A stretch of 64,000 bases of DNA from the sequence record NC_004629.1. One strand, 5' to 3'. The notes beneath the pieces were generated by a model. That model saw nothing but the letters and a program-made list of their open reading frames with translations. It searched no databases and had not been told where the DNA came from. This document shows positions 3,334-47,270 of the stretch, one piece after another. The stretch's first letter is position 1. Each line of letters opens with the position of its first letter. Position numbers and translations under genes: made by a program.

Positions 3334-12097
<8,764 letters not shown>

Positions 12098-22173: not shown

Positions 22174-22184
22174 AACAACATAAT

Positions 22185-22205
22185 GCCCTCCCATTGCGGG
22201 AGGGC
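22185..22205. terminator. Terminator between convergent genes
   Basis: GCCCTCCC-ATTGC-GGGAGGGC; identical to 60647-60667. Confidence 0.8.
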
Positions 22206-22213
22206 TTATGCCG

Positions 22214-24163
22214 TTAAACTTTTACAAGTTTATCATTTTCTATTTTCCAATTAGCATGGAAAGAAATTGGTTGACCAGTGGTCTCATCAAGAATGTCACC
22301 AGTCTTTAACCTATTTTTAATAGCTCGGTTATTTCCAAAGAATGGAACTAGTTTAGCTACTGTTACATCAGCTAATCCTGGATCTTTCATTACATACCAG
22401 CCAGGTGTTGAAGCCAGTTCATCATACTGGACAACTTTAGAAGTATCTGCAAAGATAACAATATCACCATGTCGTCCGTTCTGGACACGTTGTGATAGTT
22501 TACCCCATGTGGAGTTATTATCATAAACATATACATTAGCTGTATTTAATGTCTCACCAAGGAATGTACGGCGTAATGCAGTCAATACTATTGGTTTTAT
22601 ATTAATGTTATTCTTATATGCATTCGCTACACGATACATATACTTGGTCATGCTAAGATTAATATATTCATAAATTTTAGCTTTACTTATCCCTTTATAA
22701 TCATCCCATGCCATTGTACCTATAAGGGATGCTTCATTATAAAGAGAAGCAGGTTTTGAACTAAGTACCACTTGATGCTGCATTGTGTAAGTATAAGGTA
22801 CACGTACGTTAATACGTATCTGATCATTATCATGGATTAAAAGAGTTGATCCATGAGTTATCAGATCCCACTGAGTAATGCCCTGACTAAATAAGAATGA
22901 TCCAACTAAATAGCCATTTATTTGAATATCGCCTAGATAATCCTGATGGTCAGTACCATTTGAGTAACCTAGATTAAGATCAAAATAACGCTTAGCTGTT
23001 AGTATCTGAGTAGTATCAATAGCTTGGCCATTATCACGTGCAACAAAGATACCATCATCTACACCAACTTGGAATCTAAATGAAATAGCATACGGTTTAT
23101 TAGGATTTTCAGATGTCGTACAAAGAAAATTGTAAATGTACTCGCCAGTATGATCGAAGGTAAATTCAGGAATATCTTCTTTGTTATACGCTGGGAAAGT
23201 AACAAGCTTAATCTCACTTTCACTTGAATCACCTTTGATAACAAAGTCAGTTACTTGACCATTACCAATAGATTTATTCATACCTGTAAACAAACCAGAT
23301 GATGCAGCTTTTGGTGACCAGCTTAGCATCTGATTTACAGTATATTGAACATCTGACCTATCAACAACACCAGAGAAATAAGAACCAAAATTAAAGGCTA
23401 GTCTATTAGCGGTAAATGCAAAACTACCATTATTTTCTTTAGCATCTTCAATATTAGTGTAATCTCTTGAAGCAGAATCAGTTATAACAAAGATACCATT
23501 ACCCGATTTACGCCAAGTAGCTAGATTATCAATAGTCGCCTGACTCACTCTTTCAGGAGTTAATGCACCAGTATTATGATCTTTAGTAGAGAATAGAATA
23601 CATGCATAATACTTATTAAGATCTGTTAAAGTAAGGTCTACTGTGCCACCCATCATTTCTGGGTAATAAACATCATAGGTAGAATCTTGTACACGAGCAG
23701 CCGTATCTAGTATCTTTTTAAAACCATTACCTGACGTATTGAGGACTGAATAAGGTTCACTAGGATTACTATCTGTGATTACTAAGAATTTCTTTCCAGT
23801 TGATTCGTACTTACTACCATTCCTAATAAACCCAATAGCATTATAAAAATATCTTACCCATCCCCATAGATCTTGAGGGTTTGTTGTATTAGCCGGAATT
23901 TGGTAAGTATCATAGTTTAAATTATAGAATTTTGGAAAACTACAATCATAAAGAACATTACCAGTGCCATCTTGCACAACAGCAATAAATGGACTACCAC
24001 CTGTTGCAGGGTCACCATCATAAGCAATGTATTCAGAGAGCACCGGAGGTAACTCCGGGCTCACTGTATAATACACCTTCTGAATATCTGAACTAAAGTT
24101 AAATTTAACTTTAGAGTTTAGTGCCACAGGACCCGGCACTTGCGACGGGACAATAGAAGGCAT
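22214..24163 (-). CDS. Probable virion structural protein (649 aa) with a central GATase-like alpha/beta domain
   Basis: Beta-rich, Gly/Thr/Asn-rich; the segment TLTDLNKYYACILFST..IDNLATWRKSGNGIFVITD..ANRLAFNFG resembles class I GATase-like scaffolds. Co-transcribed with the next two minus-strand genes. Confidence 0.55.
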   Translation of the reverse strand: MPSIVPSQVPGPVALNSKVKFNFSSDIQKVYYTVSPELPPVLSEYIAYDGDPATGGSPFIAVVQDGTGNVLYDCSFPKFYNLNYDTYQIPANTTNPQDLWGWVRYFYNAIGFIRNGSKYESTGKKFLVITDSNPSEPYSVLNTSGNGFKKILDTAARVQDSTYDVYYPEMMGGTVDLTLTDLNKYYACILFSTKDHNTGALTPERVSQATIDNLATWRKSGNGIFVITDSASRDYTNIEDAKENNGSFAFTANRLAFNFGSYFSGVVDRSDVQYTVNQMLSWSPKAASSGLFTGMNKSIGNGQVTDFVIKGDSSESEIKLVTFPAYNKEDIPEFTFDHTGEYIYNFLCTTSENPNKPYAISFRFQVGVDDGIFVARDNGQAIDTTQILTAKRYFDLNLGYSNGTDHQDYLGDIQINGYLVGSFLFSQGITQWDLITHGSTLLIHDNDQIRINVRVPYTYTMQHQVVLSSKPASLYNEASLIGTMAWDDYKGISKAKIYEYINLSMTKYMYRVANAYKNNINIKPIVLTALRRTFLGETLNTANVYVYDNNSTWGKLSQRVQNGRHGDIVIFADTSKVVQYDELASTPGWYVMKDPGLADVTVAKLVPFFGNNRAIKNRLKTGDILDETTGQPISFHANWKIENDKLVKV

Positions 24164-29788: not shown

Positions 29789-30889
29789 ATGAATTATCGT
29801 AATAGCAAACTTACGTTAGTCCAGCAGAAGTGGATTGATCGTTTTATCTCCATTGCTATGGAGGTTGATAATGGCCGTGCAATTTCCAATGCATATCGCT
29901 ATACTCTTAATGAACAGGGAATTAGTTCAGATAGTGAAGATCTACGTATTCACTATCCTTTTGGAGTTGATAGAAAAGAATTCATCAAAGAACAAATTTA
30001 CAAACTATGTGATGAAGTTATAAGCCCTTTAAATCTGAAAGCATTCAGAATTAGTGGTGGTTTTGCATTACTAGATGATGAAGGAATCATTGGTTTCCTA
30101 ATGAATGGAATGGAAGGTACCACTAGTCAGAACTTTAGATTATACTCCAATGAAGAACTGATCAAAGTATTTAAATTACGTTTTGAAGAAGTATTTGATC
30201 AGACTCGTCCACCTAGTATTAAAAGAATTCGGGTTAACTATCAAAATAATGAACTATATAGCTTTAGTGAAGTTATTTCTGTTCGTAACTACAATCCAAA
30301 TATGATGGAAATGTATCCATTCCTAGATCGATCTCCAGCTGAAATCTGGACTGAATTCGCTGCATCTGAATCTAATGTTCTACTATTGATTGGTCCTCCT
30401 GGTACTGGTAAGTCTAATTATATCAATGAGATTATTCGGGCTCGTGGTTATAATGATCGTAATGTGTATCTAGCTGATCAAGATGATGTACTTGGCCACG
30501 CCGGTTTGACTAATTTTATTCGTGGTGTTGAGGATAATTCACTCATTATTACAGAAGACTCTGATAAAATGGTGGCTAAACGTGTAGATGGTAATAGTAA
30601 TATGTCAGGGCTATTAAATGCTACAGCTGGTCTAGTATCTACTAAGACCAAGATTATCATTTCTACTAATCTTCCGACTCTTCGTGATGTTGATGAAGCT
30701 TTAGTTCGACCTGGCCGTGCTTTCGATATTCTTACCTTCAAAACACTTACTGCTGAACAAGCGATTGCAGCTCGTTTAGCTAATGGTCTAGATCCAGTTG
30801 AGTTTGTCGGTAATAATCTTACTTTAGCTGAAGCATTGAATACTAGTTCTTGCAGTAGCCCACGCAAAGCAAGTCGTGTAGGTTTCTAA
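29789..30889 (+). CDS. AAA+ ATPase (366 aa)
   Basis: LLLIGPPGTGKS Walker A, IITEDSD Walker B, IISTN sensor 1, ALVRPGRAFD arginine finger. Confidence 0.88.
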   Translation: MNYRNSKLTLVQQKWIDRFISIAMEVDNGRAISNAYRYTLNEQGISSDSEDLRIHYPFGVDRKEFIKEQIYKLCDEVISPLNLKAFRISGGFALLDDEGIIGFLMNGMEGTTSQNFRLYSNEELIKVFKLRFEEVFDQTRPPSIKRIRVNYQNNELYSFSEVISVRNYNPNMMEMYPFLDRSPAEIWTEFAASESNVLLLIGPPGTGKSNYINEIIRARGYNDRNVYLADQDDVLGHAGLTNFIRGVEDNSLIITEDSDKMVAKRVDGNSNMSGLLNATAGLVSTKTKIIISTNLPTLRDVDEALVRPGRAFDILTFKTLTAEQAIAARLANGLDPVEFVGNNLTLAEALNTSSCSSPRKASRVGF

Positions 30890-41900: not shown

Positions 41901-41920
41901 ACCAGCCCTTCGGGGCTGGT
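41901..41920 (+). terminator. Intrinsic terminator (UUCG loop)
   Basis: ACCAGCCC-TTCG-GGGCTGGT then TTATTT. Confidence 0.85.
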
Positions 41921-42542: not shown

Positions 42543-42600
42543 AGGAGAGCTATTTAGCTCTCCTTTATTGCATTAAATTTTTTTTGAAATCTATATTACA
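42543..42600 (+). promoter_or_regulatory. Terminator (42543-42564) plus early promoter (TATATTAC 42592-42599)
   Basis: 42571-42600 CATTAAATTTTTTTTGAAATCTATATTACA is identical to 58001-58030. Confidence 0.8.
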
Positions 42601-43298: not shown

Positions 43299-44207
43299 AT
43301 GCTAAAGGTAAAATCATTACTCACTGGCCATATTCTTCGAGCTACCTATGATTGGTTTCTTGAGAATAACTTCAGAGATATTCTAATTGTAGCACATACT
43401 CAATTAGTACCTGATTTATCTGAGGTAGCTCTAAAGCATGCGAAAGAAGATCACACTATCACTTTCAATATCCATCCACGCTGTGCAAAGAATTTTTATA
43501 TCAGTGACGAATATATCTCTTTCAATGTAACAGTAAATGGAGTTGGGGTCAGTATTAAACTTCCTCTTTATGCAGTATTGGGTGTAGTTACACCTATTGA
43601 TGATAATTCTAACGCATTCTTTGAAATGCCACTAGTAGATAGATATCTCAATGCAGATACTATTCGTGCAACATTAGAAGGAACTGTTAATAATGTAGTT
43701 GACAAAAACCCAGTATTAACTACCGTAGGTAATGTCACTGAGGTTAATTTTAAAAATAAAGCCGATACCACTAATGGTAAGTTAGTTGTAAGGAATACAT
43801 CTGAGAATGAGCATGATCAGATGATTGAAAGCGCCATTAACAGAGTAACTGAATTTAGTAATCCAGAATTAGATGCACATATTAGAGTAGCGGTAACTGT
43901 AATTAAACAGAATGCACCAGAATTAATTATGGATTGGTGTGAGCGGGTTATTAATTGTACACGTAATGAAAACTATCAGGATAACATCAATGTACTTATG
44001 ATGGAACTCCTCAGTTACCCTATTTCAAATGTGGTTAGTGAATCAACTGTGGACTCGGGTGATAATACATCTAATTCATTTGACAATGATGTAAATAAGA
44101 TGGTTGAGGATTTCAATAATTCTTCCAATTCGCAGGTTATTATTAATAAACCTTCTCGTCCTACCGGTACACCAAAACTCACTGTTATTAAAGGTGGTAA
44201 GAAATGA
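43299..44207 (+). CDS. sspB: SspB-like ClpXP protease adaptor with inserted domain (302 aa)
   Basis: HILRATYDWFLEN, ITFNIHPRCAKNFYISDEYISFNV and LPLYAVLGV match the SspB core; C-terminal RPTGTPKLTVIKGGKK resembles the ClpX-binding tail. Confidence 0.82.
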   Translation: MLKVKSLLTGHILRATYDWFLENNFRDILIVAHTQLVPDLSEVALKHAKEDHTITFNIHPRCAKNFYISDEYISFNVTVNGVGVSIKLPLYAVLGVVTPIDDNSNAFFEMPLVDRYLNADTIRATLEGTVNNVVDKNPVLTTVGNVTEVNFKNKADTTNGKLVVRNTSENEHDQMIESAINRVTEFSNPELDAHIRVAVTVIKQNAPELIMDWCERVINCTRNENYQDNINVLMMELLSYPISNVVSESTVDSGDNTSNSFDNDVNKMVEDFNNSSNSQVIINKPSRPTGTPKLTVIKGGKK

Positions 44208-44461
44208 ATGCAACTTTAGCAATTCTTTTTAGTAGTATCAGTATCGCTGGTTATCAAGCCAATGGTGCATCGTAGTCAACCGCTGAGTTCTCTGACATGG
44301 CTACTTGTTTTAGCGCGATTGAGCGCATTCAAAAACTAGCTAAAGCAAGTGCTATTCGTAATAATGTAGAGACTGTAAAAATCAGTGATGGTGTTCTATT
44401 ACGTTATTTTTCTTCTAGTACTAGTAAAGTAGAACATACTCTAATCTGTGTAAATAAATAG
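44204..44461 (+). pseudogene. 85-codon exported-type ORF interrupted by one in-frame TAG (44273-44275)
   Basis: MNATLAILFSSISIAGYQANGAS*STAEFSDMATCFSAIERIQKLAKAS...TLICVNK*; ATGA-coupled to sspB and exactly fills the gap. Confidence 0.55.
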
Positions 44462-45603: not shown

Positions 45604-45804
45604 ATGGATCGTCTTGATGAAAGAATCGCATTCAGTGTAAAGTCGTACAAAATTTTCAATGCTCTCTCCCATGGCCGAGTTCGGGCATTGATTATTAACT
45701 TTAAAGATGGTAAGGGTACGATCGTATCTATTAGTGATGATCGCCGCCATGATAAACATCTCTGGTTCAACTGTGGACTAGTAGACAATCCGAGGATCAA
45801 GTAA
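45604..45804 (+). CDS. Hypothetical protein (66 aa)
   Basis: GAGGA RBS; TAATG-coupled to thyA. Confidence 0.6.
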   Translation: MDRLDERIAFSVKSYKIFNALSHGRVRALIINFKDGKGTIVSISDDRRHDKHLWFNCGLVDNPRIK

Positions 45805-47270
45805 TGGAACAATATCTTAATTCAATCCGTTTAGTTAAAGAACACGGTGTACATAAAGGTGACCGTACTGGTACTGGTACTCAGAGCATGTTTGGTCAAC
45901 AAGAACGTTATAGTCTGCGTAATAATCGGCTACCAGTTGTAACCACCAAGAAGATTCATCTAGCTTCTGTAATTCATGAATTGTTCTGGATGCTGTCAGG
46001 TGATACTAAGGTGGATTACCTGATCGCTAATGGTGTACGCATCTGGAACGAGTGGGTTAAACCTGAAACCGCAGTATATGAGCCGATGACCGATGAGGCC
46101 GTTCTTAAAGCAGTAACTGCCCTCATTGGTGCCCCATTCGTAATGTACTTACATTGTATGAACGATGACTCTACTCCATTCATTGAGACTGTAGCGGAAT
46201 TCGAGTCGGGTATGACTCCAGAGACTATTCAGGCCTTCTGGGATGAATATCCAGTTAACCGTGAGGAAATCCAATACATCATTGGAGTTAGCGTAACGTC
46301 GTGGAATAGGTTCGCTACTGAAGGGTTCGATGAAGCCAAAAATCCTGAAGGTATTCGTGCTGAATATAACAAGCGACTGTATCGTGCTTTGATGCATAAA
46401 GAACCAGAGCGTCTGGTCGGCGGCGATCTAGGTGCTGTTTACGGTAAGACATGGCGTAATCTTGAAGACACTCGTGTAATCCCTAAATATGAGTGGTTTG
46501 ATTATGAGAAGCGTGGTTTTGACTTCGTGGCGGATATCCCAGGTACAACCATGGAAACCGATAGATGCGTGGTTACTCGACGTATCGACCAAATCCAAGA
46601 CATCATCGATCAACTTCGCACCAACCCGGATTCTCGTCGGATCATTGTTTGTGCATGGGCGCCACATCTTATTGATGAGCAGGCACTCCCACCTTGCCAC
46701 GCATTTATTCAGTTCTGGACCCGTGAACTGACCGTAGATGAACGAGTGCAAGCTCTAGACCAAACCCAGTTCGAAGCTGATGCTTATCATGATAAGATTA
46801 GTGGTGAGATTACTCGTGGTCAACCTCCATTCGATAGTGCTGAGCAGGTTAAAGCACTTCTGCGTGTCTGTCGTGGTTATGAAAAGGCTACAGATGAAGC
46901 AGTAGTAGAATGGCTGGATCAACATGGTGCTCCGAAACGAGCCATCAGTTGTCAACTCTATCAAAGATCTTGTGATACTTTCTTAGGAAAACCCTTTAAC
47001 ATCACGTTCTATAGTCTGCTGACTCACATGTTAGCTAACCAAATGAATATGATTGCTGAAGAGTTTATCTGGACTGGTGGTGATGTACATATTTACTCTA
47101 ATCACCAAGAACAGACTGATCTTCAATTAACTCGTGAACCGAAGGTTCTACCAACTATTCGTTTCAAACAAGAAGCTATTGGTAAAGATATTCGGGAAAT
47201 TGGTGTAGATGATTTTGTTATCGAAAACTACGAATATCATTCACACATTGCTGGTAAAGTTGCTGTCTAA
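45804..47270 (+). CDS. thyA: Thymidylate synthase with large insertions (488 aa)
   Basis: GDRTGTGT, HELFWMLSG, IWNEW, GDLGAVYG, PDSRRIIV, ALPPCH (catalytic Cys), YQRSCD.FLG.PFN, GDVHIYSNH. Confidence 0.96.
   Translation: MEQYLNSIRLVKEHGVHKGDRTGTGTQSMFGQQERYSLRNNRLPVVTTKKIHLASVIHELFWMLSGDTKVDYLIANGVRIWNEWVKPETAVYEPMTDEAVLKAVTALIGAPFVMYLHCMNDDSTPFIETVAEFESGMTPETIQAFWDEYPVNREEIQYIIGVSVTSWNRFATEGFDEAKNPEGIRAEYNKRLYRALMHKEPERLVGGDLGAVYGKTWRNLEDTRVIPKYEWFDYEKRGFDFVADIPGTTMETDRCVVTRRIDQIQDIIDQLRTNPDSRRIIVCAWAPHLIDEQALPPCHAFIQFWTRELTVDERVQALDQTQFEADAYHDKISGEITRGQPPFDSAEQVKALLRVCRGYEKATDEAVVEWLDQHGAPKRAISCQLYQRSCDTFLGKPFNITFYSLLTHMLANQMNMIAEEFIWTGGDVHIYSNHQEQTDLQLTREPKVLPTIRFKQEAIGKDIREIGVDDFVIENYEYHSHIAGKVAV

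Follow-up and report, generated by a model that had tools for sequence, protein, structure and literature searches.

Proteins of Pseudomonas phage phiKZ, the model nucleus-forming phage, face host proteases and defences when they stay outside the phage nucleus, and the locus described here raises the question of whether one such protein, gp232, is an SspB-type partner of host ClpX. Our answer has two parts of different strength. From sequence and fold comparisons gp232 is a member of the SspB family, and this family assignment is well supported; its putative role, to which we give about an even chance, is that of a cytoplasmic adaptor or competitor that acts outside the phage nucleus and is tethered to host ClpX. 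For the established mechanism of SspB we refer to PMC9963277.

The window analysed is a stretch of 64,000 nucleotides from NC_004629.1, in which a window position plus 186000 gives the NC_004629 coordinate. The gene, labelled just 'PHIKZ232' (hypothetical) in the reference record, runs from ATG to stop with AAAGG about 9 nt upstream of the ATG, and both the open reading frame list and the translation confirmed the protein length given by the sequence-only reading (Table 1). The gene is present in 47 phiKZ-like genomes with protein identities of 98–100%, and in two of these records (Bobae and Churi) its product is named 'stringent starvation protein B'. Its PHROG is a family of its own.

Table 1. 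Features of PHIKZ232 in the window, with residue numbers (res) of gp232; the relatives P0002 and P0006 are described in the text
Feature	Position	Strand	Details
PHIKZ232 coding sequence	43299..44207	+	302 aa plus stop; 100% identical to PHIKZ232 of Pseudomonas phage phiKZ, NC_004629 229299-230207; phrog_25970
SspB-type substrate-binding domain, res 1-127 (sequence match 11-113)	43299..43679	+	PDB, NCBIfam, hhalign, AlphaFold2 (AF2), Foldseek
Linker 1, res 128-168, predicted disordered	43680..43802	+	pLDDT 36-46 (res 131-168); 54% identity to P0002
Internal motif GNVTEVNFKNK, res 144-154	43728..43760	+	kept in P0002, partly in P0006; possible counterpart of a family linker motif
Clade-specific four-helix insert, res 169-238	43803..44012	+	AF2 pLDDT ~90; 43% identity to P0002
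Linker 2, res 239-262, acidic and polar, predicted disordered	44013..44084	+	pLDDT 42-52; 50% identity to P0002
Short helix with D-F motif, res 263-275 (VEDFN 269-273)	44085..44123	+	D271 and F272 invariant in family alignment; 85% identity to P0002
Basic pre-tail and C-terminal tail, res 276-302	44124..44204	+	83-93% identity to P0002
Docking-like heptad PKLTVIK	44172-44192	+	part of C-terminal tail
Extension GGKK	44193-44204	+	directly after PKLTVIK

An SspB fold had been read from the sequence in residues 1–110, and this was borne out for residues 11–113 by sequence, profile comparison and predicted fold. The E. coli and H. influenzae SspB proteins in the PDB matched residues 11–110 of gp232 with an E value of 1.4e-8, and nine NCBIfam SspB models matched the protein with a best E value of 3.9e-13. 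The best NCBIfam score (49.7 bits) lay below the 202-bit equivalog cut-off, and the Pfam family PF04386 matched with an E value of 6e-5 at 23.5 bits, below its gathering cut-off of 27 bits. By these scores gp232 is a divergent SspB homologue and not an equivalog. PF04386 matches are precomputed for two of its relatives, P0002 and P0003, and the phage SspB-like family phrog_8945 matched gp232 weakly (E 2e-4). When a profile built from the long phage proteins only, without any classical SspB sequence, was compared by hhalign with the classical SspB profile, the two aligned with 98.3% probability and an E value of 1.3e-14.

The predicted structure agreed with this assignment. An AlphaFold2 model of gp232 made with 18 relatives had a pLDDT of about 90 for residues 5–127, and Foldseek searches with this model returned 13 SspB chains with E values of 3e-7 to 3e-6 and target-normalised TM scores of 0.69–0.82, among which the E. 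coli and H. influenzae SspB structures (1ou8, 8et3, 1yfn) had TM scores of 0.76–0.82. The alpha-proteobacterial SspB structures of Caulobacter (2qas, 2qaz) gave E values of only 0.1–0.2 and TM scores of 0.46–0.60, against an E value of 3e-7 for the gamma-type. Because gamma-type structures match well and alpha-type structures only at an E value near 0.1, the domain is a divergent gamma-type SspB domain. Of 55 columns with at least 85% conservation among classical SspBs, gp232 keeps sixteen, including W19, I54, N57, I58, P60, G81 and P89. Alignment comparison showed that the gp232 loop equivalent to the AlgU-contacting R91/E92 of P. aeruginosa SspB is not conserved. The SspB domain is 74% identical to that of P0002 and is without changes among phiKZ-like isolates.

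The C-terminus of gp232, PKLTVIKGGKK (residues 292–302), had been likened to the ClpX-binding tail of SspB, a likeness that holds for its first seven residues and breaks down at the last four. Comparators were 120 bacterial SspBs of 125–136 aa obtained by protein search, Salmonella SspB and four short phage SspBs. PKLTVIK fits P-x-L-x-V-[VI]-K, the ending of 119 of the 120 bacterial proteins, and [KR]-P-x-L-[RH]-[VI]-V-K likewise closes 119/120; the gp232 heptad also fits the Salmonella ending RPALRVVK. The terminal GGKK was absent from all 120 bacterial tails, none of which has GGK near the C-terminus. In the four short phage SspBs (RAY gp39, pf16 gp18, Xoo-sp14 gp69 and DT01 gp271; 128–169 aa) the heptad lies at the very C-terminus. 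Its fourth position is T in gp232 and R in bacteria, and is occupied by T, R, M or K in the four short phage proteins; a comparison with Erwinia phage RAY gp39 showed two differences (x2 and V to I). Within the window such an ending occurs in one of 436 stop-to-stop segments, that of gp232 alone.

Conservation within the phiKZ clade points to the same region. P0002, a relative of 318 aa, is 61% identical to gp232 overall; identity to P0002 peaks in the last 40 residues, at 83–93%. The tail region has zero substitutions among phiKZ-like isolates. This concentration of conservation at the C-terminus indicates a linear docking module under selection. In the host, SspB (PA4427) of P. aeruginosa is 135 aa long and its last eight residues, R128–K135, bind ClpX with a Kd of 27 nM, while alanine substitution in this stretch weakens ClpX binding about 7-fold (PMC13251409; length and residue numbering are taken as given there).

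The lengths of gp232 and its bacterial counterparts differ greatly. Host SspB had been put at about 140–165 aa, a range into which the E. coli protein (165 aa) falls, whereas the P. aeruginosa protein (135 aa; PMC13251409) and the sampled bacterial proteins (125–136 aa) are shorter. gp232 shares with bacterial SspBs (PF04386; 1OX9, 8ET3) the fold and the layout, in which a disordered linker connects the folded domain to a short docking-like peptide at the C-terminus, but with 302 aa it is about twice as long as these proteins of 125–166 aa. The heptad fits the bacterial pattern, but GGKK follows it, and the linker that precedes it spans about 180 residues and includes a folded domain, in comparison to 18–27 residues in the sampled bacterial SspBs. 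Relative to bacterial SspB the additional elements of gp232 are the four-helix insert, the D-F motif and GGKK, along with T in place of R at heptad position 4.

Several of these elements were found outside the phiKZ clade. Using tblastn and profile searches, relatives of gp232 of 196–265 aa were identified in D6, Psa21, RVTF4, PA1C/PS119XW-type phages and phiPA3, and further members on metagenomic contigs of 305–318 kb, while narrower profile queries of viral contigs gave one and four loci. This grouping was made in the present analysis and is referred to here as the long SspB-like family; in the phiPA3 record a similarity to SspB was already noted. Its members (phiPA3 gp270, PA1C, Psa21 gp299, D6 and RVTF4) share a plan of SspB domain, long linker, D-F motif and GGK ending, but are only 21–25% identical to gp232 and have no detectable counterpart of the phiKZ four-helix insert. 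A D-F-type motif lies 27–34 residues from the C-terminus in 16/16 long-family members (VEDFN in phiKZ, LLDFG in Psa21) and in 0/120 bacterial SspBs; in gp232 it stands about 31 residues before the end. All 16 members likewise carry the ending L/W-x-V/L-I-Q/K-G-G-K, which in gp232 is LTVIKGGK (residues 294–301), spaced 32 residues from VEDFN. Across 19 members the I-x-G-G-K core was conserved in 18 (I), 19 (G), 19 (G) and 18 (K) sequences, and the position of the classical Leu was L in 13/19 and W in 6/19. When the last 45–46 residues of gp232 and Psa21 were used as tblastn queries, they matched their own gene family alone, including phiPA3 gp270.

The family-invariant I-x-G-G-K and the Leu-to-Trp variants suggest that the partner or the binding mode may differ from that of classical SspB–ClpX docking. 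One alternative is that the docking partner of the I-x-G-G-K end and the D-F motif is a phage ATPase, such as a Bcs1-like protein, and not host ClpX, a reading that we regard as very unlikely. It draws on the position of the invariant GGK outside the classical ClpX-docking tail, and on a gene order of the D6/Psa21 type, SspB-like gene, a gene without assigned function for 224–240 aa and Bcs1-like AAA+ gene (BCS1_N + AAA), that is kept in 6/6 loci (L002, 3178-5231; L004, 3088-5178; L042–L045), which come from five different phages because Psa21 is represented by both L004 and L042. A Bcs1-like homologue is present in the phiKZ-like phages as well. This adjacency is confined to one lineage, however, and may reflect shared ancestry of the gene order; about 30–46 kb separate the SspB-like and Bcs1-like genes in genomes of the phiKZ and PA1C types, and the phiKZ-like homologue, matched by tblastn in two pieces, lies about 30 kb downstream, beyond the window. 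Bcs1-like ATPases are also widespread in jumbo phages that lack the long SspB-like family (PMC7824862), and no SspB-type adaptor for a Bcs1-like ATPase is known.

Docking on host ClpX had also been read into a second site, as the sequence-only reading saw two ClpX-docking-like motifs in gp232, one of them the internal GNVTEVNFKNK, which it likened to alpha-proteobacterial SspB tails. This second part was not upheld, as GNVTEVNFKNK is unlike the docking heptad of the comparators above and loosely conserved, and the predicted fold of the protein is of the gamma-type. Judged by conservation in the alignments, the second strongly conserved motif of gp232 is the D-F motif at residues 269–273 and not residues 144–154. 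The internal motif was aligned by MAFFT to PA1C NPTYVHPF and may represent, in degenerate form, the first of two more linker motifs of the long family (PYAVH and PTNVELM in Psa21), whose strict patterns are found in 14/16 members, the exceptions being phiKZ and P0002. A relaxed linker pattern, which was fitted after the fact, gave one match per family member (VTEVN, residues 146–150, in gp232) in comparison to 7% of shuffled linkers. A PDB search with the gp232 linker gave no match.

The helical insert, initially estimated at about 75 aa, was predicted to consist of four helices as its helical reading implied, with a somewhat smaller extent of about 70 residues. Its pLDDT was about 90 in the full-length AlphaFold2 model and 86 when folded alone; in the full-length model residues 131–168 and 240–262 were disordered, residues 264–273 formed a weak helix and the tail was disordered. 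Fold searches with the insert against the PDB and BFVD gave no significant match apart from the insert itself, BLASTP found no similarity between the insert and PA1C, and a HMMER search of 1.84 billion representatives with residues 111–302 recovered P0002 and one fragment and no other homologue. The alignment of the insert with P0002 contains 12 indel columns, and the six substitutions between phiKZ and the 98% cluster all fall in residues 158–256. These regional identities and isolate substitutions indicate that constraint on the protein is strongest in the C-terminal module and weakest in the insert; on sequence comparison the insert is the fastest-evolving part of gp232 and is confined to the phiKZ clade.

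Two database matches to this part of the protein were set aside. SSL7, a superantigen-like protein of staphylococci, matched residues 129–197 (window 43683-43889) locally (PDB E 6e-4; NCBIfam E 5e-6 with 26 bits, where the cut-off is 313 bits). This match was judged to be due to chance, because it is absent from P0002 and P0006, Pfam gave no superantigen family, and the AlphaFold2 model shows disorder and helices with no beta-grasp. A Pfam match to FUR (E 0.0076), below the cut-off and in the same composition-biased region, was ignored. P0006 itself is a partial protein of 164 aa, annotated as a bacterial SspB and 70% identical to gp232, from a 625-bp contig labelled Pseudomonas aeruginosa; it almost certainly comes from a phiKZ-related phage and not from a bacterial chromosome.

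Published proteomics places gp232 in the infected cell. In PMC10449902, PHIKZ232 was detected in infected cells by SEC-MS, was absent from virions, and was enriched in the shell preparation and grouped with the shell-enriched non-virion proteins, while a PHIKZ232-mNeonGreen fusion was diffuse outside the phage nucleus and not located at the shell. The RAY homologue gp039 is, like gp232, cytoplasmic (PMC10299810). [quoted passage not shown] The diffuse fluorescence is at odds with this idea, as are the retention of the docking-like heptad in phiKZ and the fully canonical tails of the short phage SspBs from related nucleus-forming phages, and we give it little probability.

In the favoured reading, that of an adaptor or competitor tethered to host ClpX, the SspB domain of gp232 would dimerise and hold a short peptide signal of a cargo protein, and the PKLTVIK tail would tether the complex of gp232 and cargo to host ClpX. 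In this way ClpXP would receive the cargo, and gp232 would simultaneously take up the docking sites on which the 135-aa host SspB relies. A clade-specific binding or regulatory surface is the most likely contribution of the four-helix insert, and the D-F motif would provide a second contact. An adaptor is favoured because both halves, SspB domain and tail, are retained, whereas a simple blocker would not need both; GGKK, the Leu-to-Trp variants, the unexplained D-F motif and the very long linker hold this reading at about the even level given above. The lack of conservation in the R91/E92 loop makes it unlikely that gp232 copies the host delivery of AlgU–MucA, and its cargo is probably not the host AlgU–MucA complex. 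Competition with host SspB for the ClpX docking site is possible.

Such competition could also be the whole function, with gp232 as a decoy that occupies the ClpX N-domain and/or sequesters tagged proteins without delivery, and so dampens host SspB-dependent proteolysis (for example AlgU release or clearance of ssrA-tagged proteins). We consider this fairly unlikely. The gp232 tail resembles the host docking tail and host SspB uses the same site (PMC13251409), the very long linker with its folded insert could misposition cargo, the AlgU-contact loop is not conserved, and the SspB of pf16 was proposed from modelling in 2017 to be a competitive inhibitor of host SspB (PMC5587285). A tail alone would suffice for a blocker, yet the SspB domain has been retained at the identity to P0002 given above and unchanged among isolates. 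Nor is a ClpX link of PHIKZ232 flagged in the SEC-MS text and tables of PMC10449902 that were covered, in which some table columns are not fully interpretable, and the literature searched contained no connection between phiKZ gp232 and ClpXP.

A broader view of the long family can also be taken, in which it would represent a multi-motif hub built on a proteolysis-adaptor fold, with I-x-G-G-K and the D-F motif docking on a partner besides or instead of ClpX (a phage AAA+ ATPase or a nucleus-surface component) and the fast-evolving phiKZ insert adding clade-specific recognition of cargo such as host defence proteins. We regard this as decidedly unlikely; if true, it would give nucleus-forming phages a programmable cytoplasmic route of degradation or remodelling. 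Should gp232 instead be the ClpXP adaptor favoured here, or a blocker of the docking site, the phage would control protein turnover in the cytoplasm, and in P. aeruginosa the SspB-dependent AlgU/MucA stress switch could be affected as well.

Phage SspB homologues have been reported previously, in 2011, 2017 and 2023. The short phage SspBs (pf16 gp18, PMC5587285; RAY gp039, PMC10299810; Xoo-sp14 gp69; pPa_SNUABM_DT01 gp271; phrog_8945) resemble gp232 in being carried by phages, in several cases by jumbo or nucleus-forming ones, but differ from it in having 128–169 aa and a canonical terminal tail without insert, D-F motif or GGK. A phage protein shown experimentally to dock on a host AAA+ unfoldase and to alter the targets of the protease, the concept put forward in the sequence-only reading, is Gp53, although this protein is unrelated to gp232, has no SspB fold and targets ClpC rather than ClpX, and serves as an analogy only. 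The 'SspB' named in a restriction-modification review is an unrelated phosphorothioation protein. As phage SspB homologues and phage proteins resembling Clp-protease adaptors were already published, gp232 introduces no new principle; it is a long, multi-motif phage SspB homologue with an orphan helical insert, of a kind already known. What is gained is a family assignment for PHIKZ232, hypothetical in the reference record, and the definition of a small family of long SspB-like proteins with conserved linear motifs.

The genes neighbouring gp232 are phiKZ-specific and without assigned function. Directly downstream, PHIKZ232.1 (23 codons, 44204-44275, plus strand) begins with an ATG that shares bases with the stop codon of gp232 (ATGA), an overlap that suggests translational coupling of the two genes, and PHIKZ232.2 follows at 44297-44461. 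A generic scan identified terminator-like G+C-rich hairpins upstream at 41901-41920 (palindromic and scored on both strands) and 42543-42564, and none between 42565 and 46000, so that a shared transcript from PHIKZ230.2 to PHIKZ235 is possible. Near gp232 the published phiKZ terminator motif had no match, its sole match in the window being at 22175-22214.

Further observations were made at this and related loci. PHIKZ235 encodes a thymidylate synthase of 488 aa (45804-47270, plus strand); typical ThyA proteins are much shorter, which suggests large insertions in this enzyme. In phage U5 (MT995928.1) an 'HNH homing endonuclease' feature is annotated under or beside the gp232 orthologue at 3590-4495, and in DT01 a GIY-YIG homing endonuclease gene lies directly upstream of the SspB gene. 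Elsewhere in the window, positions 30374-30718 (plus strand) were weakly matched in tblastn (E 6e-4, 26% identity) by the AAA module of the Bcs1-like ATPase of D6, which indicates another AAA-type gene.
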